A stretch of 64,000 bases of DNA, taken from assembly GCF_018977255.1 (NCBI RefSeq), contig NW_024704755.1, forward strand, positions 15,810,001 through 15,874,000, in the 5' to 3' direction. The translations under genes were made by a program, and so were the position numbers. The stretch is from Callorhinchus milii. Taxonomy: Eukaryota. Shown piece after piece: positions 14,315 through 58,354 of the stretch (position 1 is its first letter; every line of letters starts with the position of its first letter). The notes under the pieces were generated by a model. The model made no database searches, had not been told where the DNA came from, and worked only from the letters and a program-made list of their open reading frames with translations.

Positions 14315-14947
14315 ATGCAGTGTATACCGAGATACAGGTGAGAAAGAACTCAGAGTAATCTACGGGGAGCTAAGACCTAATGTCACAATTTTATAAACCA
14401 ATTTTAGTATATTGGTTATATTCTCTGTCATAGCGACTCAGCTCACTCACACCAATATTGTGCTGCTAGTACATCACCAGTATTTCCAGAGAAAATTGCA
14501 GTTCAAGAATCATAGAATAATGCCAGAGAAGCAAAACAGACCATTCTTCCCAAACCAAGCTGTGTGAATGCTTTTTCCACACCAATTAGCCCAATCTAAA
14601 ACTTCTATTCGCTCACCAATCCACTGAGTTTCTCACTCTTTAAGAATCTGTCCTTCCCATTTCTTCGTTTACAGAGAAATAAAACTTTGTGCCCATACTT
14701 TGCGTGAAGAATTTTTCTAACACCAATTTTTCAGTTTTCAATTTTTATGATTATCCTAAATTTGTTCCCTCTACTAACTGACCAGCTGTGTTTTGCTCCA
14801 CACAGTTAAGCCAATCTAATTTTCCTGCTTGCTCCCCAACCCCATGCCTTGACTTTTACCTAGAACTACACTTACAAAACTATCAGTATTTTATCAAAGT
14901 TGGACAAAAGGATAAACTAACAATGTTCCCGAACATTGGCTTTACAG

Positions 14948-15135
14948 GCTAATCAAGGGGCAGCTTAGCAGCTGACATATGATGCTTTAGAATTTTCTGC
15001 CTCCAAGAAAACAGGAAAATCTGAACACGATGACAAGAATACAGAGTAAGCCAAGTCATGGGCAAGAAAATCGAAAGGAGCAATAGAGGCCATCTTGATG
15101 AAACAGGATCCACAATGATATGTTTGGAAGCTGAT
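14948..15135 (+). pseudogene. Degenerate terminal cytoplasmic exon (cyt5) of gene 1
   Basis: Homologous to 38699-38902 and 58151-58354, but has TAG at 14966-14968, YAAL changed to YDAL, and the TEY tyrosine codon changed to TAA at 15047-15049. Confidence 0.85.
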
Positions 15136-16306: not shown

Positions 16307-16633
16307 GTCCTGTAGCTCAGTGGTTAGAGCACTCGCTTTGCAAGCGAGAGACCTGAGTTCAATTCCAGGCAGAGGGCGAAACCTTGAGCAAGTTTCCTTA
16401 CTCCACACAGAGCCTAATAATAATCCCTCCAAAACCAAAAACAATAATAAATTGGTCATTTTCAATCTACGACTGTTTGTGGGACATCGCTGTGCGCAAT
16501 TGGCTGCCGCGTTCGCCCACAAATATACAGTCAATTCACTTTACAGTGTGTTCTGTGAAGCATTTTGGGACGTCCTCCGGACGTGAAAACCGCTATATCA
16601 AATGCAAGGATTATTATTATTATTATTATTATT
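16307..16633 (+). mobile_element. Short tRNA-derived SINE with L2-like 3' tail
   Basis: Head TAGCTCAGTGGTTAGAGCAC (A box) and GTTCAATTCC (B box); body ends GACGTGAAAACCGCTATATCAAATGCAAGG(ATT)n. Confidence 0.85.
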
Positions 16634-20439: not shown

Positions 20440-21970
20440 CAACAACAACAACAAGATTCCATTTATAGAGCGCCTTTCACGTCGGAAGGACGTCCCAAGG
20501 CGCTGGTCAGTTGGGTCAGGACTCAAGCAGGGGGGATATGGTCAGGGTGAGGGGAGGGGAGCGAGGGAGCGAGGAATGGGTAGAGAGTCGAGAGGGGAGC
20601 TGAAGGCGCGGTCAAAGAGAAAGGTCTTGAGACCGGCCTTGAAGGAGGAAAGGGAGGAAGCAAGACAAAGGCACTGGGGGATGGAGTTCCAGAGCCCAGG
20701 GGCTGAGAGGCTGAAGGCCCGGCCAATGATGGTAGGGCAGTTGGGACGGGGGATGTGGAGTAGACCGGAGGCAGAGGAACGGAGAGTATGGGCAGGTAGG
20801 TAGGGGGATAGTAGGTCGGAGAGGTAGGAGGGAGCAAGGCCGTGAATGGCCTTGTAGGTGAGGATGAGGGTCTTGAATTCAATCCTCTGGGGGATGGGGA
20901 GCAGTGGAGGTGAGCGAGGGTGGGAGTGATGTGGTCACAAAGCCTGGTGCGGGACTCTACAGGAGCTGCAGAGTTCTGAATGACCTGCAGCTTGTGGAGG
21001 GATGTGCCGGAAAGGCCGGCGAGGAGACAGATCCCGTAGTCCAGCCTTGAGGTGATAAAGGCATGGACCAGAGTTTCAGCAGCATAAGGGGTGAGGTAGT
21101 GCCGTAGTCTGGCGATATTTTGGAGATGATGGAAGGCGGTGCAAGTTGTGGAGTGGATATGAGGAAGAAAGAACAGCTCAGGGTTGAACAGAACGCCGAG
21201 GTTCCTGATGGCTTTGAGAGGTGGAGAGTGCAGCCTTGGATGCTGATGCTGTCAGCGTTTGAGGTGCGGAGGCACCGATGTGAGCCAATCAGGAGGGCCT
21301 CAGTTTTGCGCACGTTGAGCTGAAGAAAGTTGTCTCTCGTCCAGGACTCGATGTCGGACAGGCAGGCTGTCAGGACATCGGTGGTCGTGGAGTTGAGGGT
21401 AGAGGAAGAATGCAGAGTTGGGTGTCATCCGCATACATGTGGAAGTTAACCCCATGTCTGCGGATGATATCACCAAGGGGGAGCATATAGAGGGTGAAGA
21501 GGAGGGGACTGAGGACAGAGCCCTGAGGGACACCGCACGAGACAGTGCGGGGGCTGGAGGAAAAGCCGATTGTGGAAACAAAATGGAGACGGTGGGAGAG
21601 GTACAACCTAAACCACTCAAGGACAGGGCCTTGAAGGTTGAGGTGGGAGGACAAGCGATGCAGGAGGATAGAGTGGTTGACCGTATCGAATGCTGCCAAT
21701 AGGTCGAGGAGGACGAGGAGGCAGAGGGAGCCCTGGTCGCAGATGGTCAAGATGTTATTTGTGACCTTGACCAGGATGGTTTCCGGGCAGCATGGAAACC
21801 CGACTGAAGGGGTTCGAATAATGCATGGGTGGAGAGGAAAGAGCGCAGCTGGGAGGCGACAACTCTTTCAAGGAACTTGGACAGGAAGCGGAGGTTGGAG
21901 ATGGGCCGGTAGCTTGATAGCTGCGATGCACCAAGGGAGGGCTTTTTCAAAGTGGGAGTGATGGCAGTGC
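20440..21970 (-). mobile_element. 5'-truncated L2-clade LINE, decayed RT
   Basis: Minus-strand ORFs [41 protein letters not shown]; tail GTGAAAGGCGCTCTATAAAT..(GTT)n at 20440-20500. Confidence 0.92.
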
Positions 21971-21971
21971 A

Positions 21972-22300
21972 GTCCTGTAGCTCAGTGGTTAGAGCACTCG
22001 CTTTGCAAGTGAGAGACCTGAGTTCAATTCCAAGCAGGTCAGGGCGAAACCTTGGACAAGTTTCCTTACTCCACACAGAGCCTAATAATAATCCCTCCAA
22101 AACCAAAAACAATAATAAATTGGTCATTTTCAATCTACAACTGTTTGTGGGACACTGCTGTGCGCAATTCGCTGCCGCGTTCGCCCACAAATGTACAGTC
22201 AATTCACTTTACAGTATGTTCTGTGAAGACCTTTGGGAGGTCCTCCCGACGTGAAAAGCGCAATATCAAATGCAAGGATTATTATTATTATTGTTATTAT
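21972..22300 (+). mobile_element. Short tRNA-derived SINE, near-identical to the 16307 copy
   Basis: Same head, body and tail; abuts the 5' end of the truncated L2. Confidence 0.85.
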
Positions 22301-24014: not shown

Positions 24015-24324
24015 TAATAAATAATAATCCTTGCTTTTGATATAGCACTTTTCACATCTTCTAGATGTCTCAAAGTGCTTCACAAAATATTCTATAAAGT
24101 GAATTGACTGCATATTTGTGGTCGAAACAAGGCAACTGATTGTGCAGAGCAGTATCCCAGAACATCCTGAATTCAAGTGACCAATTTATTATTGTTTTTT
24201 TTTCATGAGGGATTATCATCAGGCATGTGGAGTAAGGAATCTCGCCCAAGGTTTCGCCCTGCCGGGAATCGAACCCAGGTCTCTCGCTTACAAGGCGAGT
24301 GCTCAAACCAATGAGCTACCAATC
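24015..24324 (-). mobile_element. Short tRNA-derived SINE (minus strand)
   Basis: Reverse complement reads TAGCTCATTGGTTTGAGCACTCGCCTTGTAAGCGAG..GGTTCGATTCCC..AAACCTTGGGCGAG, followed by the same tail. Confidence 0.85.
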
Positions 24325-24858
24325 TAACCACTGGAAATATAGGGTTGTGTGAGAATTTTGAAGTCGATCCATTCATTGTTAAGGAGCCAGTGTAGCCTGG
24401 CAAAGATTGGTGAGTTGGCGATGCACACTTTAAATCTCTGCATTAATCATTGTTTTGAATGATACTATTGAGGCTTCAGAACCTGGTAAATCAATGTGTA
24501 CAGTTTTGGTCACTCCAACAGAGAGGCTGTCCGAGAGCCAACCCAGAGGAGGAAGGAGACAAAAGCAATGAGAATAATCCCAATTGTTAGAGGAATGAGC
24601 TATCAACAAGGAATAGGCAAGCTGGGCTCTCCAATCTTGTGACAAAACAATTCATTGGCGACTCATAAGGTCTCACTAATATAACACCTTTCACGTACAG
24701 CGAAAGTCTGAAAACATTTTATAATATCAGAGTGGGAGGCCATCTACGCCCTCAGGGACAGGAAGCCAAGCATCACTCTCACATCTCATCTCAAGCAAAT
24801 GCAACCCCTTGTTACAAAGCAGTGACAGATTCAGAGTTCGTCTCAGTCAGAGATCACA

Positions 24859-25316
24859 ATGTTGGCGAGTGTTGTGTTTCAGTGTCTGTCTCTCCTGTGG
24901 ATAATTTCTAAAGGTTTGTGCATATTCAATATCCAAGTGTTCGGAAAAAGAAAGTGTTTATCTCTTATAGTATTTTGTTTCAAAACAATGTTTGAATTTA
25001 TTTCTGACAGTTGCTGACGTTACGTTGATCCAAGTAATGCAACGACCCAAACACATCGCTATCAACAGAGGTGAAGATGTGACATTCTCCTGCAACTTCT
25101 CTCGCAACCAGAGAGTGAAAATTTACTGGTGGAAGCAGGGAGCGAGCGAATACATGGGAAGCAGTCACAAGAAAACATCTCACCTCGAAGCTTCTGAAAG
25201 AGCCACCCTCAAGCTCCTGGATGCAGAACTTCAGGATTCTGGAACCTATTACTGTACAATGGTGTTTCAGGGAAATATAACAGTAAATGGATCTGGATCA
25301 CATTTAACTGTATATG
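24859..25316 (+). CDS. Gene 2: orphan leader + intact V exon; no own C1/TM found
   Basis: Leader 24859-24913 and V 25011-25316 (open frame, ..DSGTYYCTMVFQGNITVNGSGSHLTVY) with intact splice sites and upstream promoter block. No C1 or TM homolog seen before gene 3. Confidence 0.8.
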
Positions 25317-26543
25317 GTAAGTGTCATAATAAGTCAGAGATCGTAACTATTACATTGGCTCAAACCATAATTTATTTATGTAACGTCTCTCACTGTTGGG
25401 AGAGCATCTTAAAGCTCTTTACAAAGGCTGAGGGCTGCCGGAGCTGAAACCGAGGTGGGAGGGGAGAGTGGCGAAAAGGACAGTCAAAGAGGTGCATTTT
25501 CAGGTGGGATTCGATAGGAGAGAGGGACGGGCGAGAAGGATGGATTTCTATAAGGAATTCTAGAAGTTTGGGGCAATCTGGCTGAACGTTCCCTACACAT
25601 GAATATTCCCTAAAGTGGGGTGACATAAAACACTGGACACCATATTCAAAATAAGGTGTAACTATCGATTTATATATATCAACCATTAACCCTGTGATTT
25701 ATATTTATAAATCCTAGATTTCCACTTGATTTTTTTGAGAGCTTTTTTCACGTTGACTTCCCACAGTAAGATTTATCCACATTTAAACCCTAAGCCCTCT
25801 GATCTGCTTCTTTAATGATTATCCTCATGTTGTGGAGGGCAGCGGGGGGGGGGGGGGGGGGGGGGGGGGGTATCCAGTGTCTCATTTGATCTAAACCAAG
25901 CTGAAGTTTTCATTCATCCCCCCTACACATGGAAATTCCAGAGATGGAAGGGAATGCACACTCTCTCCCTGGAGGGATACAACCTGCTTAACTAATTCGA
26001 GAAATTATTAGGTGCAGGTTGGCAAGAGCCAAGTGTTCGCGCCCCAGATTATGCGTTGGGATACGGCTGGAGTGTAACCAGCTAAAACCGCATAGCTTAC
26101 CATTGATGTTGCTGTCTGGCAAGGTTTCCCATTGCTTTTCCAGCTCGGACGAGCCTATCCGTTAGGGCTTTGGCTTTTAGTGTTAACAGGAGCTGAGTGT
26201 GAATGTCTCTCTGCCCACAGTGGCTGGTCGGCCTTTCCAAGTTCTGTCCATGAGCCCGGCTGTCATCAGCAGTGCCCTGTGGACCCGCCCGGCTCAGGAA
26301 CCGGATTACTGAGACTCACATAGAGGACAGGATTGATTTCCATATTCTGTGCCAGGCTTGTGACCTTGTAGCCACTTCAGCCACATATAGTCCACTCCAC
26401 AAAACACACAGTCACCACCATTTACAGTATATCCTGTGAAGCGCTTTCAGACATTTCGACAACATGGTGAGGCGCGATATCAAATGCAAGAATTATTATT
26501 ATTATAATCTCACTTCAGCCTTAGGAACCTGGAAGCTACGGCG

Positions 26544-32775: not shown

Positions 32776-32800
32776 NNNNNNNNNNNNNNNNNNNNNNNNN
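32776..32800. other. 25-N assembly gap
   Basis: The flanks (gatctatcaaca / ggaatggaca) are directly adjacent in the paralogs at about 46865 and 52755. Confidence 0.95.
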
Positions 32801-33049: not shown

Positions 33050-36000
33050 ATGTTGGCGAGTGTTGTGTTTCAGTGTCTGTCTCTCATGTGGATCATTCCT
33101 AAAGGTTTGTCCTTATTCAATATCACAGTTTGCTGAAAAAGGACAAGGATAAAGTTCTTATTCTAGTTGTATCCATTTATGCAGTGTATCGTATCTCTAA
33201 CTTACTCTGTGTTTATCTCTTTGTCGCAGTACTTTTCTTTCAAAACAATATTTGAATTTATTTCTGACAGTTGCTGACGGGACATCGATCCAAGTAACTC
33301 AACATCCCGAACACGTCGCTGTAAACATTGGTGAAAGTATGAAGTTCTCCTGTAACTTCCCCGACACTAAGATTGTAATAACAGGGAGAGAGTGAATACC
33401 TGAGAAATGATCCTAAGAAAGAATTTGGTCAGGAAAGTACAGGAAGAGCCTTCCTCAAACTCTTGGATGTGCACCACCAGGATTCTGGAATCTATTACTG
33501 TGCAGCGGTGACTCCGGGAAAAACAACAGTAAATGGGACTGGATCACATTTAACGGTATATGATGAGTGTCATTATAAGGCAGAGAGCTTAACTATTTAC
33601 TCACGCCACCGGGATTCTGGAGCCTATCACTGTGCAATGCAGACTGACTCACGAAAATGTTTACTCGATCAGTCATTTACATTTATGAAAAGTCTCTCAT
33701 TGTTGGGGGAGAATCTTAAAGCGCTTTACAAAGGCTGAGGGGCTGCCGGAGCTGAGACCGAGCTGGGAGGGGAGATGGCCACAAGGACAGTCAAACTGGT
33801 GTGTCTTCAGGTGGGATTTGCGAGGAGAGAGGGAAGGGCGAGAAGGATGGATTTCGGGAAGGAGTTTATAATGATTTATCATCTAAAATATATTGGTTCT
33901 TATTATTCACCACAGTCTGTCGAGTGTAAGCTCAAATTCGTATGCATTACATTTCGTGTGCCATTTCTATGCCTAATCCACTCATCTGTCTCCCTCTCGC
34001 TGAAGGCGCTTACAATCTTTTTGCAATAACCAAATGCAAGTTCTACATTGTTATTTATTTTGTGAGTCTTGTAAACTTCGAAACTATCCCCCATATACCA
34101 TACTCAAGATTAAATAATGTTGCGAAATATTATAGGTTAGTGGGAGTTGACTTAGAAAATTACACTAATAGCTGTTGAGTTTCATAATTCACTTGATAGC
34201 TGTCGTGAGATATTATTGTGCACAAAATTGTCTGTCGCGTAGGAAAACAAATACACGCAATACACTTCATAGTTAAACCTGCGAAGCGATTTGAGACGTG
34301 ATAAGGCGTTATATCAAAGATTTTTATTGCAGTGCCCCCAATTCCTCTGAATAATTCGTGCAAAGATCCTCAAAGACATCCTTCTGTGTTTCGACTCTCG
34401 TGTGTAAAACAGCAGCGTTTTACCCGAGAATCTCACCTTCACATGGTTTAAAAACGGCACAGAAATTACAACTGGGATACATACCACTAAACGACAGAAC
34501 ACTGAGGGACTGTTTGAAGCTTCCAGCTCTGTGGAGGAGACACAGTCTGTCCAGAATGGGACAGTTTATACCTGTTGTGTGTCTCACATCAGCCTCCAGA
34601 CTCCAGGAATTCGCAACTACACCATTTGCACGGTTTACCTTCCTGACAAAGGTAGGAATACAGCAGTCTCAGTGTCAATTAGCGTTAAGGGTCTTCGCAA
34701 GAGAATTTTCTTCTTTTAATTCACACCATGAACGACAGCCATATAATTTCCTTCATGTAAAATATAAACCACTTTCACCTTTTAATGCATAACATTTGAA
34801 TTGCTATGAATGCAAAGTATCACTTGCCCTTGAAAATATTCACAATTCAGATTTCAAACCTTTCATTTACAATATATTGTATTCAAGAATGCGATATGAA
34901 ATATGAATTTCCACCCCATTTCATAACTAGGAGTTGCTTTATGTCCCCTCTGTTTCACTTCAAGACCTGTCTTCAATATCGCCATTATATTAAATAACTT
35001 CAGTAAAATAGATGTCTCTCTCTCCAGCTGTCTCCCTGCAAAATAACTGAGATACCTGCCCCCGTTCTCCTTACTAATAATAAATATATTCACCCACAAA
35101 ATATAGAATCAAAAATATAATTTCCTACAAAGCACTTTGAGACACCAGCATTATGTAATGAGGCATTATAACAATGCAATACTTATTATTTATTATTATT
35201 CCCTGGAGGTTTCATTGTCTACAGCTTTTTCTCCACAAAATAATTAACTTGCTTTCTCATTTCCCCTATTGTTCAATAAAAATGATCGAATACATTTTTT
35301 TAAAACGTAATCCGATGGCGAAGCAGGAGACAAGTCACATGAGACATCCCGGTTTCCATTTTTTAAATGGAAAAACATAACATCGTAATTTGCCCTTAAA
35401 CACTTTTTTTTCAAGAGGATTGTGTAATTGCTGAAACTCTAAACCATAAGCTCATAATGTGCAGCTCCATCTCTCATCTCCCGGTTTCCAGACCAAACAG
35501 TCTCCCAAATCAAAAAATCCAGATGCTGCAAATCTGAAAACAAAAACAGAAGTCGTTGGGAACACTCAGCAGATCAGGCAGTATATATGGAGAAAGAAAG
35601 TGAGTCCTGTTCTGACGATGGGTTGTGGACCTGAAAAGTTGACTAACTTTCCTTTCTCTATAGACGCTGCCTGACTGCTGAGTGTTCCCACAGACTTCTG
35701 TTTTTATCCCCAAACTGGTGGCTTACCCTATGACTGTGGGGCATTACTGTGCAAAAATTGGATGCCGGGATTGCACAAAAGTACACGATCACAATATTTT
35801 ACAGTCATTGTATAAAGCGATTTGAGATGTCTTGACAATATAATATATGGATCATTGTATCATTATTATGATCTTTCCTACAGAGGAAAATAAACTTCGA
35901 AAGTGGTTACAGATCGTTGGACCTGCAGTGGGGTTGGCTTTGTTGGTGCTGTTAGTGTACTTTAGAAAGCGATCCAAATTAAAGAAAACGAAAGGTAAGA

Positions 36001-44600: not shown

Positions 44601-47125
44601 ATGAGTCTAGTCCGAGAGAAGGGCTGCAGAGCACAGGAGGGTCTGCAGCTTCCGTAGTGAGACACTGGGAGTCTCGGCAGCCAAGGAGAGCGGGAATGAT
44701 TGATTCAGGTGATGTTGTGAAGATGCCGGAAACCTGAGCGATTCATAGCCAAGAAGGATTGTAGCATTTTGGGTGTCAGCCGGTGTCAGACATATGTGGG
44801 AATGCATCACCATGCATAGCAGTATCCAAACCAAATGCGAGTTCCATGTACATCACATACACATGAACAGTTCTGTGTATGGAAAGTGGAAGTGCAAGTG
44901 GAAGCATATAGATGAGGAAGAGGAGTGAGCTTATGTTATATGATACACAGTATCAAGAGCATTAGCAAAAGAGAGAAACATGGTACCCTACACAATATCC
45001 AAAACCAAATTTAAAAGATCAATTATTGAAATCTAATACTGAAGGGTTATTTATGATTATAATAATCTTTGGATTCGAAACAGCTATAAAATTAAAGCTG
45101 TTCATAGGCAATTATAGTCAGCTATAATTATTGTTCATAGTCACTGCATTTTGTGTTCTGTTTGAGACGTCCTCCACAAGTGAAATGCGCTATTTCAAAA
45201 GGAAAGATTATACTATTTCATATTGGAGAGTGCAGCTCTACAATGCTTTCCTCGTCTACGAACTTAATTCAGATGTGAGTGTGATATCAACTGAGCTAAA
45301 TTTACACTTAAACCATAATGCTATTATACAATTATTACACTATTATCACAATGCTCTACCCCTCGCCATCTATTTATGTCCAATCTGCCCTGAACACTCC
45401 ACCTTGCAGTGGTCACGATATCTTAGGTGCTCAGCGTCACAGAATTATTGTACATAAGTGTGTGTTGCTCTCACCAAAATCCTTTCACGTCACATCTAGG
45501 GTTTTTTTTTATGAGTGAACCACGTGGATTTATGTTTCTTTCACTTCAATAAGTGAACTGCAGAGGGAGGCAAAACTACAATATAGTTTCAGCTGCAAAT
45601 AGACTTCAGCACTGTATTCATTCTTTTCATCACCAGCTGAGCAATAGCGATACTGACAATCATAATCCTCCAATTTGATTAAAGTCTTATCACGCATTAA
45701 AAGTTGGTGACAGTGTTACTCAGAGTTTAATGTACTGATACAATACAGGAGGCGAACGCGATAGCCCATTCGACGCAGCAATGTCCACAAACAGACATGA
45801 AATAAATTACCACTTTTACGTCGGGATGTTTGGCCAGGAAACCGGGACAAAATCTCTTCTGTTTTCCAGTAGCGACGTCGGATATTTTACACCCAGGTGA
45901 ACAGCCAACCCGGACTTCAGGCAAACGTTTCACTCTATTAGAGAATGTACTGAAAGTACTCTTGTCAACATTGAACCCATAATCTTCTGACTCAGTGCCC
46001 AGAGTGCTGAGACAAGCTAACGTTTATTGTTCATTTTTACATTTCACCTGGTGCCTTCAAGCAACAAAACGTCTTAAAACGGATTGCTGTTAAGTTAGTG
46101 ACTGTTTGCAAGCGAGGGCGGCAGAGAAAATGCACTGTCGATTCAACAGTATCATTCAAAACAATATTTAGCGCACAGACTTTGACATTAATTGGAAAGT
46201 AATCCCGAAATCCATAGAATAAAATTCACCTTCTATTCTGTAATTAGCCGAATGCAGTGCACTCAGGAGCATGTTACATGACAGTGCCTTGAGTGTACAT
46301 GAGCTGGAGCTCTAACCTCAAGTTAACGCTATGGCAATTTCAGCATCATTTTATTTACAACTATTTAATCGCATCTCTTCCAGCTACAAATAGTTTGCGT
46401 TATTCACATGTGTCTGTCTGGAAGATGCTCTTTGCAATTCATTAGAAGGTTCAAATGAAACGTGTGCTCTATCACGATGCAATGAAACAACTTTGTTGTT
46501 TCGAGCCCAGAGCCAGTGGAGCGGAGGCGGCGGGAGCGGAGTGGAGAGTAAACAGGTCGGAGAGGCAGTGAAGGACAGTCAGGGAATGTGTGCTCATGTA
46601 AACCAGTGTGAGGATCTTGAAGTCGATCCATTCTGTGATAAGGAGCCAGTGTGGCCTGGCAAGGCTTGGGGGGATGGCAATACACAGTTTAAATTTGTGC
46701 ATTAATTATTGTTTTGAATGATAATATTGAAATTTCAGCACCTGTTAAGTCAGTGTGCACAGTGCACAATGTCCGAGTGACTCTCGGACACCCCACCATA
46801 GGGGCTGTCCGAGAGTCAGTTCAGAGGAGGAAGCAACAAGAATCATCCCAAGGGTTAGAGGAACGATCTATCAACAGGAATGGACAAGCTGTGTTCTCCA
46901 GACTTGTCAGAAGGCGACTCATTCGGGTCTCTCGGGGTCTCACTAATATAATACCTTTCACATAAGGCGATAGTCTGAAAGCATTTTATAATATCAGAGT
47001 TGGAGCCCAACTGCGCCACAGGGACAGGAAGTCAACATCACTCTCACACATCTCATCTCAACTGACTGCAACCCCTTGTAACAGATCAGTGACCGCTTTA
47101 GGGTTTGTCTCAGTCAGAGATCAGG

Positions 47126-49826
47126 ATGTTGGCGAGTGTTGTGTTTCAGTGTCTGTCTCTCATGTGGATCATTCCTAAAGGTTTGTCCTTATCACAGTTT
47201 GCTGAAGAAGGACAAGGATAACGTTATTATTCTTGTCTTCCCGATTTGTAGAGTAAATCTCATCTCTAACTCACTCTGTGTTTATCTCTTTGTCGCAGTA
47301 CTTTTGTTTCAAAACAATGTTTGAATTTATTTCTGACAGTTGCTGACGGGACATCGATCCAAGTAACTCAACATCCCGAACACATCGCTATAAACACTGG
47401 TGAAAATGTGAAGTTCTCCTGTAACTTCCCCGACACCAGCATTATAACAACAAACTGGTGGAAGCAGGGAGAGAGTGAATACCTGAGAATTGATCACAAG
47501 AAACAATTTGGTCAGGAAAGTGCAGGAGAGGCTTCTCTCGAGCTCCTGGATGTGCGCCACCAGGATTCTGGAATCTATTACTGTGCAGCGGTGACTCCGG
47601 GAAAAACAACAGTAAATGGGACTGGGTCACATTTAACGGTATACGGTAAGTGTCGTTATAAGACTGAGAACTTAACTGTTATATATAATTGATCCGTCAT
47701 TTACATTCATGTAAATTAATTTAATCATTGTTGGGGGAGAATCTTAAAGCGCTTTACAAAGGCTGAGGGGCTGCCGGAGCTGAGACCGAGGTGGGAGGGG
47801 AGAGTGCCACAAGGACAGTCAAACTGGTGTGTCTTCAGGTGGGATTTGCGAGGAGAGAGGGAAGGGCGAGAAGGATAGATTTCGGGAAGGAAGTCTAGAC
47901 CTTCGGGTCAATACAAGAATATTCCCTGTGCACGAACGTTCCCTGAAACAAACACTCCGCTGACCAAAAATAACACTTTATAATAATTTATCATCTAAAA
48001 TATACTGGTTCTTATTATTCACCACAGTCTGTCGAGTGTAAGCTCAAACTCGTATGCATTACATTTCGTGTGCCATTTCTATGCCTAATCCACTCATCTG
48101 TCTACCTCTCGCTGAAGGCGCTTACAATCTTTTTGCAATAACCAAATGCAAGTTCTGCATTGTTATTTATTTTGTGAGTCTTGTAAACTTCGAAACTGTG
48201 CCCCATATACCATACTCTAGATCAAGTAATGTTGCGAAATATTATAGGTTAGTGGGAGTTGACTTAGAAAATTACACTAATAGCTGTTGAGTTTCATAAT
48301 TCACTTGATAGCTGTCGTGAGATATTATTGTGCACAAAATTGTCTGTCGCGTAGGAAAACAAATACACGCAATACACTTCATAGTTAAACCTGCGAAGCG
48401 ATTTGAGACGTGATAAAGCATTATATCAAAGGTTTTTATTGCAGTGCCCCCAATTCCTCTGAATATTTCGGACACAGAACCTCAAAGAGATCCTTCTGTG
48501 TTTCTGACTCTCGTGTGTAAAACGGCCGCGTTTTACCCGGAAAATCTCACCTTCACATGGTTTAAAAACGGCACAGAAATTACAACTGGGATACATACCA
48601 TTAAACGACAGAACACTGAGGGACTGTTTGAAGCTTCCAGCTCTGTGGAGGAGACACAGTCTGTCCAGAATGGGACAGTTTATACCTGTTGTGTGTCTCA
48701 CATCAGCCTCCAGACTCCGGGAATTCGCAACTACACCATTTGCACGGTTTACCTTCCTGACAAAGGTAGGAATACAGCAGTCTCAGTGTCAATTAGCGTT
48801 AACTGTCTTCACAAGAAAATTTTCTTCTTTTAATTCACACCGTGAACGACAGCCATATAATTTCCTTCATGTAAAATATAAACCACTTTCACCTTTTAAT
48901 GCATAACATTTGAATTGTTATGAATGCAAAGTATCACTTGCCCTTGAAAATATTCACAATTCAAATTTCAAACCTTTCATTTACAATATATTGTATTCAA
49001 GAATGCGAGTATGAAATATGAATTTCCACTCAATTTCTTAATTATTAGTAGATATTATGTCCTCTCTGTTTCCCCTCAGACCTGTCTTCAATATCGCCAT
49101 TATGTTAAATAACTTTTTTAAAATTATCTGCTCTCAGGCTTTTTACAATGACTCTTTTGTTCAAACTCAGTTCCCTGATCCCTGTGGAGCGGCATTGAGA
49201 CAGGAAGATATCTGTGCCGATGATGGTGCTCAGGAAACCTTGTTTCACCTTATAATGGCGCAGCACATTGGAGCGTTTTGACCCGCGATTACAGTTTGGC
49301 TGCACTTGGGAACTTTTAATAGATGTCTCTATCTAAATCCGTCTCCCTGCAAAATAACTGGCACCGATCTCCATACTGATAATAAATATATTCACCCACA
49401 AAATATAGAATCAATTCACTTTACAGTATATTCTGTGATGCGCTTTCGGAATTCTCGAAGAGTTGATGAGGCGCTAATATCAAATTCAAGGGTCAATATT
49501 ATCACTTACATTATTAGTTGAATCAGTGCAAAGGTTCGTTTTAACATATATTACAGGGAGTTGATGCTACTGAAAAGTTCAACATTAACCATGCGCAAAT
49601 ACTGTTCTGCACTGAATCCTAAATTGTTCCGCTCCTCAGTGTAGTCCATTTAATGGCAAAATTGTAGTTGAAAGAGATTATCTCACAACTCTCATTATTC
49701 TGTGTTTCCTCAGTAAAATTTAACGCACTCAGATATATTGAAATGTTTCGGTTTGGATTCAGCGCGGTGATAATATTACTCGTGGTCGTCTTCCTTGTGG
49801 ATTATTTCAAAATTAATCCTCTTTAA
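47126..49826 (+). CDS. Gene 4: activating-type V-C1-TM(Arg) receptor with very short tail, about 264 aa
   Basis: Leader 47126-47180, V 47340-47645, C1 48445-48765. TM exon 49714-49828 (tgtttcctcag acceptor, phase 1) reads VKFNALRYIEMFRFGFSAVIILLVVVFLVDYFKINPL*, with TAA at 49824-49826 and then AG|gtaag. Candidate 3' exon from 50243. Confidence 0.8.
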
Positions 49827-52800
49827 AGGTAAGACATTAATTGATTTGAGACCGCGCCATTGCTTTAATTTTAAAATATTACAAAATGTAGAATAACTGA
49901 CGGATCAAAAGTGAGAAAGTGAGTTGGTAAATAAACTGATGCAATGCTTTAGAGTGTGAAAATGAAGACATTGTATGCAGAAGCAATCATTGCTATGTGA
50001 TACACTTCCCGAAAATATCCAGAAGTCCTTTCTTTATAAGGTAATTAGTTTACAAAAACATGAGTATTTTCTTGTGAACAAATATTCGAGCCACCCCAAA
50101 ATATGTAAATATCATTTCATTGTTTGACTGATATAACCTTCAGCAAATTAAGATAGAAACGCCAATCCTAATGTGAACTCATGGTTTTTCTTCAATGTTC
50201 TGATCATGTATTGATTAAGGTTATCATTGTTTTCCTTCCAGATATCTGTGTTGCCCATGAGACTGATGTGCCAATCATCTAAAACATGTTTTCATAACGT
50301 TTTGCAATACATCTTTTCCTTTCAGATATTCGACGTACTAATATACTGTATCTGAAAAGCAAATGAAGCGCTAAAAAATGTATACGGAAACTCGAAATGT
50401 AACCGAATCCACGGCGATGGACAGTCCAGGGTTTGCACCCGCGCTGGTGGTGGAAGCGGAAGGGATTGGGGGCAAAAGATGACCGAAGTTGCATTGATAT
50501 CGCACTTCGATATGAAAAGTAGCAATTCGTGGAATCAAAATGGGAATAATTATTTAACAATATTGACAATTATTCCCTTGTTATAGGAACAAAAGACGAG
50601 TCATCATTGACTGCAGGAAAAGTGAAGAACCGAAAGAGAATCTACAGTGTATGTCCAAATGCAGCGCAGAAACTTAAATAATCTGTAATATACGGATAGA
50701 TAAATATTATCCTGGAGAACGCGTGTGCACATAAATTACTAAACAGTGCACGATAACTACTGCTGAAGTTGGATGTATTATATTTGCAGATTAATAAATA
50801 GAGAACTGTAATTGTAAAAAAAAACAAGAGATTCCCTTATACAGATAACCTTTATACTTTAATACTAGAAGGAATAGTTTAAGATTGTATCACCCAATCT
50901 TGCCCGGTCAGTGTGTCTGCACAGGACTTGGCTCAGAGCAGAATTAGAGTTGGATGAACCTCAGTGAATATGGTCCGACCCGAGATTGCGACAGGCTCCA
51001 ATAACACAGGAAATTGTAAATGCAGCCAGAAATACCGAGTGTGCTGAGGTCTATACGAGAAACCGCAGACGAGCTTCAGAGGCGATTTGCAGTCAAACAA
51101 CTGTCACGTAAATTCAAAACAGAGCCGATAAAGGCTGCGATTCGCTGCTTTGGATTCTTTTCATTCAGCAAAACAAACGCAGCGACAGGAATGCACCGTG
51201 TGCCGAAGGTGGGAAACAACAGGGAAGCAGGAGACGGCATCCACACAGCACTGAGGTTGTGCTGCAGCGACAGGCGCTGATTAATGGAGTACACCGATGT
51301 TAATTGTAATACCCAATTGTATAAAGTAATGTTCCTATCAGTTCCGTCTTGTAAGTTTATTAGAATGTTGCAGATAATTAGTCTTAATTGTTTTCGGATG
51401 TTTCTTGTAGATTTTACAACAGAATATTTCCCGATTGTAGCAATTACTATACCTAATTACCCCAAAAGCCATGTTGATCTAACAATGTGGCAAAATTGTA
51501 CCAGAGAATTGTTCAATTAAAAATATTCCGTACATCATAACACAAGACGATAATCAGTTTCTTTTTTTAAAAAAAAGCGTCGTGTTATCAAAATTTAATG
51601 GCGAACAATTATGGAAGAGAAATCTCCTTTACCTACGCTGACTCTTCCTAGTGATAACGTGATATACTTTATGGGAATCCTCGTTAACAAACAACGCGCA
51701 ATTCATCCACGGTACTGAAAAGATCCAGGTTGTGTTTTGGGGTCAGCCGGATGTCTGCGGAAATTTATCACCATGTTTAAGATTGTCCAATCCAAGCTGA
51801 GAATCATATGTGAACGATCTACAATACAGACATGTTGTTAAATAAAATACATAATCTTGCATTTTGTGTCAATCTGAACCTTCTTTCCTAAGGAGTTAAA
51901 CACAAACACTGTCGCTCGTTTCAGACAGATGCACCGTAAAATGTTTATTGTTTCACATCTGTATCGATTAGGAATGGTAATTGTCGTTATCCCCACTATC
52001 CCACTGTGGCTATGATTCACACTCTAGAGGCAGACTGGCATAACTCCTACTCGTGATCTCAAAAATAATGAGTTCATTTGATGGAGGAGCGGAGAGGGAG
52101 TCAATATAATGGTGAGGAGATTTTACATTACAGCGCCTTGAGTGTACATGAGCTGGAGCTCTAAAGTCAAGCTGACGCTATGGCAAATATAGCATCGTTT
52201 TATTTACAACTATTTAATGGCATCTTTTCTTGCGATAAATAGTTTGGTTTGTTCAAATTTGTCTCGCTGAAAGATACTCTTTACGATTAATAATAATAAT
52301 AATAATGATTCGTTTGAAGACTAAAAGGAAACATGTGCTCACACTGTTATGCAATAAAACAACGCGCCCATCACCAGGAATGGATTAAAGCTCGGCCACC
52401 GATGTTGGAAAGGAGGGGACGAGAACCCAACAGGAGCCCAGAGAGGAAACAGCTCGGAGCGCAGTGAGGGTCAGTCAGGGAATGAGTGGTTATGTAAACC
52501 AGTGAGAGGATCTTGAAGTCGATCCATTCTGTGATAAGGAGCCAGTGTCGCCTGGCAAGGCTTGGGGGGGGGGGGGGGGGGTGGTGATTCACAGTTTAAA
52601 TCTGTGCATTAATTATTGTTTTGAATGATAATATTGAGACTTCAGCACCTGTTAAGTCAATGTTGCTGTCATCGCAACATAGGGGCTGTCCTGAAGACAA
52701 TCCAGAAGAGGCGGGAGAGAGAAGCAACAAGAATCATCCCAATGGTTAGTGGAACGATCTATCAACAGGAATGGACAAGCTGTGCTCTCCAGACTTGTGA

Positions 52801-53016
52801 GAAGACGACTCATTCGGGTCTCTCGGGGTCTCACTAATATAACACCTTTCACATAAGGCGATTGTCTGAAAGCATTTTATAAAACCAGAGTTGGAGCCCA
52901 ACTGCGCCACAGGGACAGGAAGTCAACATCACTCTCACACATCTCATCTCAACTGATTGCAACCCCTTGTAACAGATCAGTGACCGCTTTAGGGTTTGTC
53001 TCAGTCAGAGATCAGA

Positions 53017-56000
53017 ATGTTGGCGAGTGTTGTGTTTCAGTGTCTGTCTCTCATGTGGATCATTCCTAAAGGTTTGTCCTTATTCAATGTCACAGTTTTC
53101 TCAAAAGAACAACTTACTCTGTGTTTATCTCTTTGTCGCAGTACGTTTTTTCAAAACAATATTTGAATTTATTTCTGACAGTTGCTGACGGGACATCGAT
53201 CCAAGTAAATCAACATCCAGAACACATCGGTATAAACACTGGTGAAAATGTGAAGTTGTCCTGTAACTTCTCCGACACCAAGATTATAAAAACAAAGTGG
53301 TGGAAGCAGGGAGAGAGTGAATACCTGACAAATGATCACAAGAAACAAACTGGTCACGATAGTGCAGGAGAGGCTTCTCTCGAGCTCCTGGATGTGCGCC
53401 ACCAGGATTCTGGAATCTATTACTGTGCAGCGGTGACTCCGGGAAATACAACAGTAAATGGGACTGGATCACATTTAACGGTATATGGTAAGTGTCGTTA
53501 TGACACTGAGAACTTAACTATTATATATATTCGATCCGTCATTTACATTCACGTAAAGTCTATCATTTTTGGGGAAGAATCTTAAAGCGCTTTACGAAGG
53601 CTGAGGGCTGCCGGAGCTGAGACCGAGCTGGGAGGGGAGAGTGGCCACAAGGAGAATCAAACTGGTGTGTCTTAAGGTGGGATTTGCGAGGAGAGAGGGA
53701 AGGGCGAGAAAAATGAGTTTCGGGAAAGAATTCTAGAACTTCGGGTCAACACCGCTGAACATTCCCTACGCAGACACCGCGCTGACCAAAAATAAAACTT
53801 GAGAATAATTTACCATCTAAAATATACTTGTTCTCCTTATTATTCACCATAAGCTGTAGACTGTAACCTCATATTCGTATGCATTGCATTTCGTGTGCCA
53901 TATCTCAGCCCAATCAACTAATCTATATTCGTCGCGCTGAAGGCGCTTACAATCTTTTTGCAATGACTAAGTGCAAATTTTTCATAGTTAGCTATTTTGT
54001 GATTCTTGTTAACTTGGAAATTGTGTGCCTTATAACCTGATCCAGATCATACATAAATGTCCAATATTATAGGTTAGTGGGAGCTGACTTTGACTGTTGC
54101 ATTGATAGCTGGTGAGTTTCATCGCTCACTTTAGAGGTACCGTGAAATATTTTTGTGCACAAAATTGCCCGTCACGGACGACAACACATACACGCAATAC
54201 ACTCCACAGTTAATCCTGCGGAACGAGTTGAGACGTGATAAAGCATTATATCAAAGGTTTTTATTGCAGTGCCCCCAATGCTTCTGAATATTTCGTACAA
54301 AGGACATCAAAGCGATCAATCTGTGATTCCGACTCTCGTGTGTGAAACGGCGGCGTTTTACCCCGAGAATCTCACCTTCACATGGTTTAAAGATGGTACA
54401 GAAATTACAACTGCGATAAATACCACTGAACGACAGAACGCGGAGGGACTGTATGAAGCTTCCAGCTCTGTGGAGAAGACACAGTCTGTCCAGAAGGGGA
54501 CAGTTTATACCTGTCGGGTGTCTCACATCAGCCTCCAGACTCCAGGAGTTCGCAACTTCACGGTATACCTTTCTGACAAAGGTAGGAATCCAACGGTGTC
54601 AGTGTTAATTAGCGTTAACCGTCTTTCACAAGAATATTTCCCTCTTTTAATTCAAACCGCGAACGTTAGCCATATAATTTACTTCATATAAAATATATAT
54701 CACTTTCACCTTTTAATGGATAACATTTGCCATTGAAAATATTAACAATTCAGATTTCAAATCTCTAATTTCCGATATATTGTAACCAATAATGCGAGTA
54801 TGAAATATGAATTTCCACCCCATTTCTTAATTATGAGTTGCTTAATGTCCCTTTTGTTTCCCTCAGACCTGTCTTCAATATCGCCATTATATCAACAATT
54901 TTAGTGAAATTATCTACTCTCAGGCTTTTCACAGTGATGCTTTTGTTCAAACTCAGTTCCCTGATCCCTGTGGAGCGGCAGTGAGACAGGAAGATATCTG
55001 TGCCGATGATGGTGATCAGGAAACCTTGTTTCACCTTATAATGGCGCAGCACATTGGAGTGTTTTGACCCGCGATTACAGTTTGGCTGCACTTGGGAACC
55101 TTTAATAGATGTCTCTATCTACAGCTGTCTCCCTGCAAAATAACTGCCACCGATCTCCTCACTGATTATAAATATATTCACCCATTTTTATTATTATTCC
55201 CTGGAGGTTTCATTGTCTACAGTTTTCTCTCCACAAAATAATAAACTTGTTTTCTCATCTCCCTTACATTTCAGTCAAAAATAATCGAATACTTTATTTT
55301 AATCCGATGGCGATGCAGGAGAAAAGTGAGATAAGACACCCCGGTCTCCATTTTTTATACATTGTTCTTCAATGGAAAAACATGACATCGTAATTTGTCC
55401 TAAAGCACTTTTTTTCAGGAAGATTGTGTAATTCCTGAAACTGTAAACCATTCGATCACAATGTGCAGTTTCACCCCTCATCTCCCGGTGTTCAGACCAA
55501 CAATCCCCCAAAACAAATGGCAAAGTACTCCAGATGCTGGAAATCTGAAGACAAATACAGAAGTCGCTGGGAACCCTCAGGCAGCGTCTGTGGAGAAAGG
55601 AAAGTGAGTCCAGTTCTGAGGAAGGGTCGTGGATCCGAAACGTTGACTCACTTTCCTTTCACCACAGACGCTGCCTGAGGGTTCCCAGCGCTTCTGTTAT
55701 TGTCCCCAAATCAAACTGTTGGCTGTGGGGCATTGCTGTGCAAATATTGGCTGCTGCGATCGCACAAAAATACAGAATTACAACATTTTACAGCACATCT
55801 CACGCTTTGAGACGCCTTGACAATGTGATAAGACGTGATATCAAATATATGGATCATTATATCATTATTATGATCTTATCTGTTGTGGAATAATCTCACT
55901 TTCACTTTCTATAGAATCGTTGCAAGTTCTGATGCTATGTACTTTACTGATTGTTGGATCTGTAGTGGGGCTGGCATGTTTGCTGCTTTTGGTATACTTT

Positions 56001-58354
56001 CGAAAGCGATCCAAATTAAAGAAAAAGAAAGGTAAGAATCAAATTATTTTGTTCCAGTTAATAATGAACGCTTGATTTTAGTACATGTAAGTGTGCAAGT
56101 GCTTGAGAGACTGTTTTTCATGGAAAAATCAACCTAGAAACTCTGGGGGTTCAATTGTTTTTCACTCTTTTCATTCTCCATTGGAGATTCAGTAAAAAAT
56201 TCAGTTATTGTATTTCATTCATTTTAGGGATACAAAGGAAACAGAATGATTCGGATCATCGTAGCCAGCAGGTAATAACTATCCCAAGCAGTGTTTCATA
56301 CCTAAAGGGTGATCGACAACATTGAACAGGATTGTGTTGTTTATAATTATATGAGGCTGTTTCTAAAATATTCCTTGCCTTATTGATGGCTTCACTATGT
56401 CATTGAAATTGGCTTCACACCAATAAGAGACAACAATGCAACACAGGCGACATAATATACAGGGCAAACAGTCTTGAGAAAACATTCCCATACATAAAGA
56501 AAAACGTTGAGAGTTGCAGTTTGTGATTTACAGGAAATGCAAAGAGGAGATGCTGAGAAGGTCACTTATATCACATTGGATTTGAAAGGTGCCAATAAAC
56601 TTTCAAGACCGAAACATCAAGAACACAAGAAAGGTTACGCAAAGGTACAGCTGAAAAGCATTACATCGACACATAGAATCATATTATCCTAACTGTCGTA
56701 GATAGATTGAAGCTCACGTGCTCTGTTTGGGGCACCTCACTTCAGGGAGGATGTTAATTGCCGCAGAGAAGATTTGCAAAGCGTGGTTTTTGTTCATTGG
56801 AGCTCGACAGTCGAGAGGGGATCTAATGAAAGTTTACCAAATTAGTAATGATTCTGACAGTGTATATAGAAAGAAACTACTCTTTGTTAAGGGAATCAGC
56901 AAATAGAGGACATGTATAAGATTGTCACAAGGAGCGAAACGAAGATTTAGCAGATTTTTTTCACACGAGGAGTTGTTTCGGTAAGGTGGTAGAAGTAGAT
57001 TCTATCATGAGTTTCAAGAGGAAAGTTGATGAAAGAGGATACATGAAATATATGCTTAACTGGCCTCCAGTTCGATTATACAGAACACCACAAACTTTTT
57101 TTTATTCGTGAGCCTTGACAGTGAGTGCAGCAAAATGGGCTACTCAATAGAGATCATGGTAGATTGGAAACTGCCCATGATTTCCACCCCCACACACTCC
57201 TTCAGCCACCCCCATACACACATCAATGGAGGATAAGTTTAATTACAGCTGTCAATCATGGATGGAGCCAGGTACATCTATAAAGCTTATGGCACGGAAC
57301 AGGTTTTATCAATTGTGCTATGGGAATAAACAAAGCGGAGCATCATATCGGTGTTTTCTATGATGTTTCTAAACTTTTTGCATAGAGAGTGAACTAACTA
57401 AATTAACAATCCTTCTCTTTCACAGACCAAGCAAGGGGTAGCCAGTAACAACCAGACGTATGCTACTCTTGATTTTTCTGACTCCAAGACAACACAAAAA
57501 ATGAATCGCAGTGTCGTAAATACAATGTATGCCGAGACACAGGTGAGGACGTACAGCAGATTAATCTAAAGGAAACTAAGACCTAATCACACAATTTTAC
57601 AAACCAATTCTTAGTATATTGGTTTATTCTCTGTCATAGACACACAGACCACTCTCAATAATATTGTTTTGCTAGTCCATCATCATTATTCCCAGAGGAA
57701 ACTACAGTTCAAGAATCATACAACCATGCCAGAGAAGAGAAATAGACCATTCTTCCCAAACCAAGCTGCGTGAATTTTTTTCAGACCAATTAACCCAATT
57801 TAAAACTTCCATTTGTTGCACAATTCATACAGATTTATCCTCTTTAAGAATTTGTCCTTCCTTTTTCTTGCTTAACATAGAATTCAAATTTCTTGCCCTT
57901 CCTTTGCATAAAATATTTTTCTACCACCAATCCTTCAATTTTCAATTTCCATGACTATCTTAAATTTATTCCCTCTACTAACTCATTGCTGTGTTTTTCT
58001 CCACAAAACCAAGTAAATGTAATTCTCCTCCTTGCTTCACAACCTCATGCCTTAACCTTTACCTGGAACTATACGTAGAAAACTGTCAGTAGTTTTTCAA
58101 AGTTGGACAAATGGATAAGCTAACAACGTTACCAAACATTGGCTTTACAGGGCAAGCAAGAGGCATCCGCTAACAAGCTGACATACGCTGCTTTAGAATT
58201 TTCTGCCTCCAAGAAAACAGGAAAACCTAAATACAATGACAAGAATACAGAGTATACCAAGATACCGGTGAGAAAACAGAAAGGAGCAATAGAGGCCATC
58301 TCGGTGGAACAGGATGCATATAATATTACAATAATAAGTTCAAAAGCTGAATAG
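53017..58354 (+). CDS. Gene 5: intact inhibitory-type V-C1-TM-ITIM/ITSM receptor, about 421 aa
   Basis: Leader 53017-53071, V 53182-53487, C1 54270-54581, TM 55915-56031 (ESLQVLMLCTLLIVGSVVGLACLLLLVYFRKRSK), cyt1 56228-56271, cyt2 56534-56644 (VTYITL), cyt4 57426-57542, cyt5 58151-58354 (LTYAAL, TEYTKI). Total 1266 nt open. The cyt3 exon is absent. Confidence 0.88.
55558..55696 (+). mobile_element. Penelope-derived hairpin insertion with hammerhead core in its loop (gene 5 C1-TM intron); homolog at 35547-35700 in gene 3
   Basis: Arms 55558-55610 and 55645-55696 are near-perfect inverted repeats; loop 55611-55644 contains CTGAGGA..GAAACGTT. Absent at the equivalent gene 1 site (about 8255). 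Confidence 0.75.

Follow-up and report, generated by a model that had tools for sequence, protein, structure and literature searches.

What kind of receptor does a cartilaginous fish gene encode when its membrane anchor carries an arginine at the outer end of the span, and with which signaling partner would such a receptor work? We address this question for gene 4 of a tandem cluster of immunoglobulin (Ig) domain receptor genes in a 64-kb stretch of the Callorhinchus milii genome (hereafter the window, to which coordinates refer unless another locus is named). One exon of gene 4, at 49714–49828, encodes a transmembrane (TM) segment that the original prediction, made from the letters of the window, took for an activating module of leukocyte receptor complex (LRC) type, joined to a SIRP/TCR-like V-C1 ectodomain and similar to the TM segments through which mammalian receptors bind FcRgamma or CD3zeta. 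Our analysis indicates that gene 4 is probably the activating member of a paired, SIRP-like VJ-C1 cluster that is anchored by this exon, and that its partner would belong to the zeta/gamma class of adaptors bearing ITAMs (immunoreceptor tyrosine-based activation motifs). The landmarks of the anchor are:

49714–49828, + strand: gene 4 exon for stalk, TM segment and short tail, 115 nt, starting in phase 1, with canonical AG/GT splice sites, encoding VKFNALRYIEMFRFGFSAVIILLVVVFLVDYFKINPL*
49749–49751, + strand: codon CGG for the intramembrane Arg, third residue of the hydrophobic span
49800–49802, + strand: codon GAT for Asp, 17 residues after the Arg (+17), closing the span on its cytosolic side; the next residues are Tyr-Phe-Lys
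49829–49846, + strand: context of the donor, gtaagacattaattgatt

Behind the acceptor ...tttcctcag|TA (49713/49714) the exon translates in phase 1 as (V)KFNALRYIEMFRFGFSAVIILLVVVFLVDYFKINPL*, with a Gly two residues beyond the Arg (+2; 49755–49757) and a TAA stop at 49824–49826 that is followed by AG and then by the donor gtaaga from 49829. The exon sequence, the Arg, the Gly at +2 and the acidic residue at +17 read exactly as had been claimed, and the stop lies 2 nt before the donor, as had also been stated. The best hydrophobic windows of 19–21 residues contain the Arg at position 3–5; in the top-scoring one of 19 residues, MFRFGFSAVIILLVVVFLV, it stands third. Only 16 uncharged residues separate the Arg from the Asp, and the bilayer therefore cannot be crossed without burying a charge.

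To place the exon among its relatives we compared nine TM-exon sequences, that of gene 4 and those of eight elasmobranch species (Mustelus, Carcharodon, Cetorhinus, Chiloscyllium, two Scyliorhinus, Heptranchias and Heterodontus), in an alignment that is ungapped from the Arg onward. Homology searches returned cartilaginous-fish proteins only; the C-terminus from Mustelus that aligns to gene 4, for example, reads ALIPRFVLGFLVILILTIIIVDHFKRRLF. The Arg is found in eight of the nine sequences, where it is encoded by CGG, CGT or CGA, and because three synonymous codons are used it is held at the amino-acid level; Chiloscyllium carries Gln (CAA), one change from CGA. The residue at +17 is acidic, either Asp or Glu, in 7/9 and Val in both Scyliorhinus. 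A His or Tyr at +18 and a small residue at +4 are present throughout (9/9 each), Lys at +20 in all sequences except one (8/9), and the Phe at +1 is conserved. Of the Arg/Gly/acidic spacing put forward by the original prediction, the Arg and the acid at +17 are conserved in sharks, whereas no sequence but gene 4 has the Gly at +2, and the conserved small residue lies at +4.

The genomic setting of the exon is shared as well. The V, C1 and TM exons follow one another in this order on one strand at the six elasmobranch loci examined (Carcharodon, Heptranchias, Chiloscyllium, Mustelus, S. canicula and Heterodontus), and where the junctions were read, in Carcharodon, Heptranchias, Heterodontus and gene 4, the TM exon is entered in phase 1. 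The donor form AAAG|gtaa is common to all six elasmobranch loci, and the 18 nt around the donor, AAAGgtaagacattaatt, are identical in C. milii and Heterodontus. A profile built from the elasmobranch exons alone scored the gene 4 peptide at 13.4 bits, with none of 2000 shuffles as high, and the best match of this profile in a six-frame translation of the window was the gene 4 TM exon itself. Because position, phase and residues are conserved, because no shuffle scored as high and because the exon is the best six-frame match, it lies beyond chance; on this comparative evidence it is a real exon rather than a chance open reading frame (ORF), and the exon type is older than the split between chimaeras and elasmobranchs. 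When a profile of seven shark TM exons was searched against 1.84 billion proteins, four matches were obtained at E <= 0.001, all of them from the shark family. Conservation by helix face was also examined and not used (moment 51 degrees from the Arg, p = 0.07).

Upstream of the anchor, gene 4 contains three further exons:

47126–47180, + strand: leader exon, with ATG and donor AAAG|gtttgt, ending in phase 1 in frame with the V exon
47340–47645, + strand: V exon, a VJ-type V-set with the J-like motif NGTGSHLTV, matched by Pfam V-set, I-set and Ig_3
48445–48765, + strand: C1-set exon (Pfam C1-set, E = 1.1e-12), with sites tgcag|TG ... AAAG|gtagga

Joined as 47126–47180 + 47340–47645 + 48445–48765 + 49714–49826, these exons and the TM exon give a 795-nt ORF of 264 amino acids (leader, V, C1 and TM) in which all junctions are in phase 1 and all splice sites are canonical. 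The leader is of a type also found in the C. milii paralogues P0004 and P0005. The V exon is open between the sites cag|TT ... TACG|gtaagt, retains both canonical Cys and is 87% identical to the V exon of gene 5, while the C1 exon shows 94% identity to the frameshifted C1 of gene 3 over 80 amino acids and 75% to that of gene 5. Pfam places the V-set at residues 30–120 and the C1-set at residues 142–209. The AlphaFold model (mean pLDDT 88) consists of two Ig domains in a light-chain-like V-C1 arrangement and a continuous helix at residues 226–261 that corresponds to the TM exon, and the best Foldseek matches to this model are the V-C1 light chains of antibodies (Fab). The J-like strand N-G-T-G-S is invariant or nearly so throughout the shark family. 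Among PDB sequence matches, SIRPalpha (2wng, E = 8e-16) and SIRPgamma (4i2x) are among the best non-antibody entries, with antibody chains scoring equally well or better, and a UrIg2 chain (9dmx) is the second-best match of all, by way of the C1 domain. A narrower name drawn from the PDB was tried and rejected, the V domain alone matching titin, DCC, Robo and scFv equally, and the ectodomain is best described, as far as its sequence goes, as V-C1 and nothing more specific.

The window has ~40% GC and three short N runs, and proteins translated from it find their best matches among C. milii models. By tblastn within it, five V exons stand in tandem on the + strand (3274, 25010, 33270, 47339 and 53181), followed by a total of four C1-set exons (5563, 34329/34411, 48441 and 54266). 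Uncharged TM exons are located at 35907 (gene 3) and 55902 (gene 5), and a match to the uncharged TM type after the C1 exon of gene 1 (8551–8586, 12 amino acids, E = 0.21) adjoins an N gap. Many exons in the window contain tyrosine motifs resembling immunoreceptor tyrosine-based inhibitory or switch motifs (ITIM/ITSM), for example LTYAALEF...TEYTKI at 38672 and 58124; such exons are carried by genes 1, 3 and 5, and the interval from the gene 4 TM exon to gene 5 contains none. With its V, C1, uncharged TM and ITIM/ITSM exons the window therefore represents a cluster of non-rearranging VJ-C1 receptors, mostly of the inhibitory type, and a single C1 exon per gene is found both here and at the six elasmobranch loci. 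The inhibitory counterpart of gene 4 and the repeat at which their homology ends are:

53181–58351, + strand: gene 5, the inhibitory counterpart (tblastn within the window)
53181–53489, + strand: gene 5 V exon
54266–54580, + strand: gene 5 C1 exon
55902–56042, + strand: gene 5 uncharged TM exon
56510–56656, 57423–57548 and 58124–58351, + strand: gene 5 ITIM/ITSM exons, with the motifs VTYITL, LTYAAL and TEYTKI legible
49386–49520, no strand assigned: repeat of a short interspersed element (SINE) family, end point of the gene 4/gene 5 homology, with at least nine further copies in the window

Gene 4 (46265–49398) and gene 5 (52115–55184) share 82% DNA identity over 3.1 kb that include the V exon, the C1 exon and part of the next intron, and identity between gene 4 and gene 3 reaches 96%. 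The ~2.5 kb that hold the gene 4 TM exon (49655–52115) have no second copy in the window; the 140 nt on the 5' side of this exon (49517–49662) match an intron of gene 1 (6057–6195). Compared with the inhibitory-type TM exon of its neighbors, the gene 4 TM exon obtained an hhalign probability of 8%, and the sole DNA similarity between the two types is 60 nt at 67% in their A-rich 3' ends (E = 0.055). Derivation of the activating TM from the inhibitory TM exon of the family was considered on these grounds and rejected as unsupported, and no relic of the activating TM exon was found within the window in genes 1, 2, 3 or 5. The claim that this exon is unrelated to the TM exons of genes 1, 3 and 5 is therefore upheld.

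The distribution of the exon over the ectodomain tree indicates how it came to be where it is. Gene 4 is sister to the product of the C. milii inhibitory gene 1 (99*), and at least four positions of the tree, all well supported, have the activating TM: those of C. milii, of Heptranchias, of Heterodontus and of a clade made up of six galeomorph sequences. A single clade for the activating-TM sequences was rejected (delta lnL 173; approximately unbiased (AU) test p = 1e-4). Because it is found on at least four ectodomain lineages, one old exon has been recombined repeatedly with the ectodomains of inhibitory neighbors, and such repeated recombination is the signature behavior of paired receptors. 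The cluster also has the makeup of a paired one, with tandem genes of similar ectodomain and inhibitory members that combine an uncharged TM with ITIM/ITSM exons, and gene 4 has that of an activating member, in that its TM holds a basic residue, its short tail lacks motifs and its ectodomain tracks those of its inhibitory neighbors. The Pfam V-set and C1-set assignments, the AlphaFold model and the ITIM/ITSM-bearing paralogues together support the original view that an activating-type TM is attached to a SIRP/TCR-like V-C1 ectodomain. We found no published description of this shark receptor family in a literature search; the gene 4 TM exon is so far unannotated and apparently undescribed, while the kind of system to which it belongs is well known.

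In gene 4 the TM exon takes the place of the uncharged TM and ITIM/ITSM exons of the family. The anchor that it encodes consists of a short stalk, a span of ~22 residues with the Arg three residues in from the outer face and the Asp at the inner face, and a motif-free tail of ~5 residues. In the mechanism that we propose, the buried Arg would make the receptor dependent on, and able to signal through, a disulfide-linked ITAM dimer with an intramembrane Asp pair, and by the 'RDD' rule of TCRalpha-zeta-zeta, CD89-FcRgamma and NKp46/NKp30 this dimer would be of the CD3zeta/FcRgamma class. On binding the same ligands as its ITIM-bearing neighbors, or similar ones, the receptor would then give an activating signal, and the stop 2 nt before the donor would remove only a dispensable tail.

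This choice of partner follows from the position of the charge. A single-pass TM whose Arg sits near the top assembles with zeta-zeta or gamma-gamma through their Asp pair (TCRalpha, CD89, NKp46 and NKp30 do so), whereas a central Lys pairs with DAP12 and the mid-membrane Arg of NKG2D with DAP10, and charged chains that remain unassembled stay in the endoplasmic reticulum (PMC13107469). The likeness to TCRalpha-zeta-zeta and CD89-FcRgamma is a functional analogy only, in that a top-of-TM Arg could dock on the Asp pair of an ITAM dimer, and TCRalpha differs in having an extra central Lys for CD3 delta-epsilon (PMC13107469). Both the catshark and the nurse shark are documented to express CD3Z, and the elephant shark has annotated CD3 chains. 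Because gene 4 fits the top-Arg geometry and CD3Z is documented, a zeta/gamma-class dimer is the best estimate, with CD3zeta as the documented candidate. FcRgamma itself, which had been named as a partner, is not established. A search with human FcRgamma returned tetrapods only among the matches listed, which is uninformative on a shark FcRgamma and is not evidence of its absence.

The end of the exon bears on whether gene 4 is intact, and the features concerned are:

50242–50282, + strand: candidate exon for a tail or 3' untranslated region, DICVAHETDVPII*, behind the acceptor ttttccttccag|, which only a TM exon shorter by 1 nt would make coding
49930–49935, + strand: AATAAA, ~100 nt past the stop (pattern scan)
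Mustelus asterias, locus L004, 31008–31120: orthologous TM exon
Scyliorhinus canicula, locus L006, 15759–15880: orthologous TM exon
Heterodontus francisci, locus L005, 20373–20480: orthologous TM exon

The orthologous exon measures 114 nt in Heptranchias and 108 nt in Carcharodon, both of phase 1-1, compared with 115 nt in gene 4. Where Carcharodon reads CCG TTT AAA G|gt, gene 4 reads CCT CTT TAA AG|gt, with the extra base directly after the conserved Pro codon. The suggestion that one T fewer would restore phase 1 is borne out by the lengths of these two orthologues, and the tail that it predicted was found at 50242–50282. In elasmobranch orthologues the same donor is joined to small tail exons, such as that encoding DLVQK in Carcharodon. 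Mustelus, like gene 4, has a TAA stop 2 nt before the donor (CTG TTT TAA AG|gt); in S. canicula a TGA comes 7 nt ahead of the donor, and the Heterodontus exon exits in phase 2. Orthologues of the TM exon are, by these comparisons, frame-labile at their 3' end. Because the stop recurs in Mustelus and comes earlier still in S. canicula, the tail beyond Lys(+20) is free to vary and its loss is tolerated. Given the AATAAA, the gene 4 TM exon may also serve as the terminal exon.

Several observations weigh against gene 4 as an activating receptor of the zeta/gamma class. The Gln of Chiloscyllium and the Val of Scyliorhinus mean that neither the Arg nor the acid at +17 is absolutely required. In gene 4 alone the residue at -3 is Glu (E-M-F-R), which could neutralize the Arg within the helix; in elasmobranchs this residue is L, M or V (L-I-P-R, L-T-H-R, L-I-H-R, M-I-V-R, V-F-P-R). 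One inhibitory-type TM, that of P0032, reaches 16 bits against the activating profile, so that TM similarity alone is weak and the case rests on position, phase and the charged columns. The exact 264-residue product is absent from protein records, and the TM exon is contained in none of the C. milii protein models returned; the UniProt models P0011 and P0014 for gene 4 run on into introns and lack it. Finally, a 2014 survey did not find FcRgamma, FcR-like or C2-only LRC genes in shark genomes (PMC4016189).

Other explanations were also weighed. Gene 4 could be a short-tailed decoy or ligand sink that needs no adaptor, its Arg and Asp snorkeling at the two interfaces. Their placement, three residues from the start of the span and at its end, would allow this, as would the substitutions tolerated in Chiloscyllium and Scyliorhinus at these two sites and a pairing of the Glu at -3 with the Arg. 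We nevertheless consider it unlikely, since with a run of 16 uncharged residues the bilayer can be spanned only if one charge or more is buried, and since a decoy needs no distinct TM exon kept through chondrichthyan history with conserved flanks and an Arg maintained through three codons. Short-tailed family members with an uncharged TM (P0016, P0039 and P0044) can be read both ways, as they demonstrate that tail-less forms exist without a charge and also fill the decoy niche with an ordinary TM. That gene 4 is activating through an adaptor of the DAP12/DAP10 class instead, like SIRPbeta1 or teleost NITR9, is in our estimate very unlikely. It is true that SIRPbeta, the closest paired mammalian ectodomain analogue, uses DAP12 (PMC12975943), that NKG2D pairs an Arg with DAP10 (PMC13107469) and that FcRgamma is the very adaptor reported missing in sharks (PMC4016189). 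DAP12 receptors, however, carry a central Lys and NKG2D an Arg in mid-membrane, whereas the gene 4 Arg at the top of the span has the RDD geometry, and CD3zeta is present in cartilaginous fish. It is also decidedly unlikely that gene 4 is a decaying or unexpressed copy, or that the extra T is a homopolymer error of the assembly, as might be argued from the one nucleotide by which the TM exon exceeds the symmetric 114-nt orthologue, from the frameshifts in both Ig exons of the neighboring gene 3 and from the lack of an annotated model or recorded product. Against decay, every exon of gene 4 (leader, V, C1 and TM) is open, its splice sites are intact and so are the canonical Cys and Trp residues, the stop costs only residues past the TM, and annotated genes of Mustelus and S. 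canicula tolerate the same stop or an earlier one. The AATAAA lies 100 nt downstream, and a stop 2 nt before the last junction does not trigger nonsense-mediated decay.

The remaining alternative concerns ancestry rather than function. The spacing of the Arg and the acid at +17 also occurs in human NKp46, GPVI, CD89 and LILRA2, and the likeness of the gene 4 exon to NKp46-type anchors is suggestive but falls short of showing common descent. When 22 hand-picked human TMs were scored against the elasmobranch-only profile, the five LRC TMs ranked 1, 2, 3, 4 and 9 (one-sided Mann-Whitney p = 0.0014; scores of 2–9 bits; Arg aligned on Arg for NKp46). Because this panel was chosen by hand it is a lead, not a test; mammalian TM sequences were sought in the literature and its supplements, where the CD3zeta TM string alone was found. 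The hallmark of FcRgamma-coupled TMs is an NxxR motif, present in LILRA2, PIR-A, NKp46, GPVI, OSCAR, FcalphaR and Xenopus XFL (PMC2413239), and in CD89 as QNLIR (PMC13107469). Like the NxxR module of LRC and XFL receptors, the gene 4 exon encodes the TM separately, has its Arg at the outer, N-terminal end and leaves hardly any tail; in paired families both kinds of exon provide the activating option where other members have an uncharged TM with ITIM exons. It differs in its ectodomain, which is V-set and C1-set here and C2/I-set in the LRC family, and in the Asn at -3, which is absent from 9/9 shark sequences; membership of the NxxR module therefore fails on its defining feature. In line with this, and with the search of 1.84 billion proteins, which returned the shark family only, we do not retain the label 'LRC-type' for the exon. 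The stalk of gene 4 contains an NxxR-like string, NALR (49731–49742), six residues before the membrane Arg, which is not conserved in elasmobranchs and lies outside the hydrophobic span because Y-I-E comes next; it is the sole literal LRC motif in gene 4 and is probably a coincidence.

We give a small chance to the possibility of true homology between the gene 4 exon and the tetrapod TM1/NxxR exon, both descending from one zeta/gamma-coupling exon in the jawed-vertebrate ancestor that was shuffled between unrelated Ig superfamily ectodomains and thereby onto V-C1. Such an origin would be in keeping with the published view that the TM module is ancient and common to the FcR and KIR families (PMC2413239), with the ranking of the LRC TMs at the top of the hand-picked panel and with an ungapped, Arg-anchored register in which a small residue at +4 and an acid at +17, the latter followed by an aromatic residue or His, recur in the two groups. 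The panel has the weaknesses already named, however, and scores of 2–9 bits can be attained by TM composition. No LRC or XFL protein was matched at E <= 0.001, the NxxR Asn is wanting in all nine shark sequences, and both FcRgamma and LRC-type C2-only receptors are reported absent from sharks (PMC4016189). Convergence under the same adaptor geometry explains the spacing equally well. If the shared origin were true, adaptor-coupled innate activating receptors would be as old as antigen receptors. On the same reading the receptor pattern Arg(0)/acid(+17) could mirror an adaptor pattern Asp(0)/Arg(+16), taken from FcRgamma and from a CD3zeta TM string in one paper, the helices then fitting each other on both sides of the membrane.

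With the anchor read as that of an activating member, the gene 4 family can be compared with other receptor systems. Like SIRPalpha and SIRPbeta1, its genes have a VJ-type V domain followed by a C1-set domain, stand in tandem with near-identical ectodomains, and comprise inhibitory ITIM/ITSM members next to an activating one whose tail is minimal and whose TM contains a basic residue. The non-rearranging VJ of SIRP, with a J-like G-x-G-x-x-L-x-V strand in the V exon, is found in gene 4 as NGTGSHLTV. SIRPs differ in having two membrane-proximal C1-set domains (V-C1-C1) where gene 4 has one, and SIRPbeta uses a Lys and DAP12 where gene 4 has a top-of-TM Arg. Of flanking genes foreign to the family, from which synteny with SIRPA/B could be read, the window contains none. 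Teleost NITRs share with the shark family a non-rearranging VJ-type V domain, large tandem clusters, and inhibitory ITIM forms together with activating forms that have a charged TM; their second domain is I-type rather than C1-set, and the activating NITR9 couples to DAP12. We know of no description of NITRs in cartilaginous fish. The chondrichthyan UrIg and UrIg2 (PMC12227049) are likewise non-rearranging, with a VJ domain followed by C1-set domains, but UrIg2, with its nine C1-type domains, dimerizes in an Fc-like manner and has a link to the antigen-receptor complex, whereas the gene 4 family has a single C1 domain and paired ITIM and Arg-TM forms. An identity with UrIg was tried for the gene 4 family and rejected.

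The rest of the cluster, and its annotation, yielded further observations. NCBI names within the shark family are inconsistent; many members are called 'SIRP-like', and others tapasin-related, NCR3LG1-like, Ig lambda-like or CD276. The Heptranchias perlo model P0025, named 'H-2 class II ... beta chain-like' (locus L002, 9737–10057), is without a V exon; a V exon of the family lies just upstream of it in the locus, and the model is therefore truncated and misnamed. In the window, the match to the gene 3 V exon (33270–33561) is divided between two frames and the gene 3 C1 exon (34329–34650) contains in-frame stops, while its TM exon (35907) and ITIM exons (37457, 37976 and 38672) remain open; with ~95% identity to gene 4 in places, gene 3 is probably a recent pseudogene. 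For the gene 2 V exon (25010–25318) no C1 exon was detected before gene 3, where an N run is located at 32776–32800, and the NCBI model P0005 links this V exon to a frameshifted C1 exon. The gene 1 copy of the terminal ITIM/ITSM exon (14921–15109) has stop codons inside it (QLTYDALEF...NTE*AK), and gene 1 probably has a functional tail that stops before this copy, like that of the model P0002. A long TG/CA-rich simple repeat (8635–9387) with N runs at 8939–9072 and 9157–9316 directly follows the TM-like match of gene 1, and the 5' part of its TM exon may be hidden by an N gap.

Repeats are frequent in the window. Copies of a dispersed repeat of ~120 nt are located at 6817, 7987, 9513, 16512, 19428, 22180, 24020, 26385, 40268 and 49386, and near such copies three tRNA-like sequences score above the Rfam tRNA threshold (16310–16372, + strand; 21971–22042, + strand; 24254–24325, - strand); the repeat is probably a tRNA-derived SINE family. 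ORFs of retroelements of the long interspersed element (LINE) type, with the endonuclease Exo_endo_phos_2 and the reverse transcriptase RVT_1, occupy 11499–14005 (+ strand) and 21373–21867 (- strand), the former within the cytoplasmic region of gene 1 between the ITIM exons at 11036 and 14216.

Paired receptors are central to the regulation of natural killer and myeloid cells, and little of their deep history has been documented below the level of bony fish. Our data indicate that cartilaginous fish do have a dedicated, Arg-bearing anchor of the activating type, which has been attached anew repeatedly, as in KIR, LILR and SIRP. The C. milii annotation, in which gene 4 has so far been represented only by fragmentary models without a TM, is corrected accordingly. 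The finding is of moderate interest for comparative immunology. Gene 4 provides a reagent for asking which ITAM adaptor served the innate receptors of early jawed vertebrates, and the shark exon allows an inherited origin of the Arg(0)/acid(+17) geometry to be tested against a convergent one.

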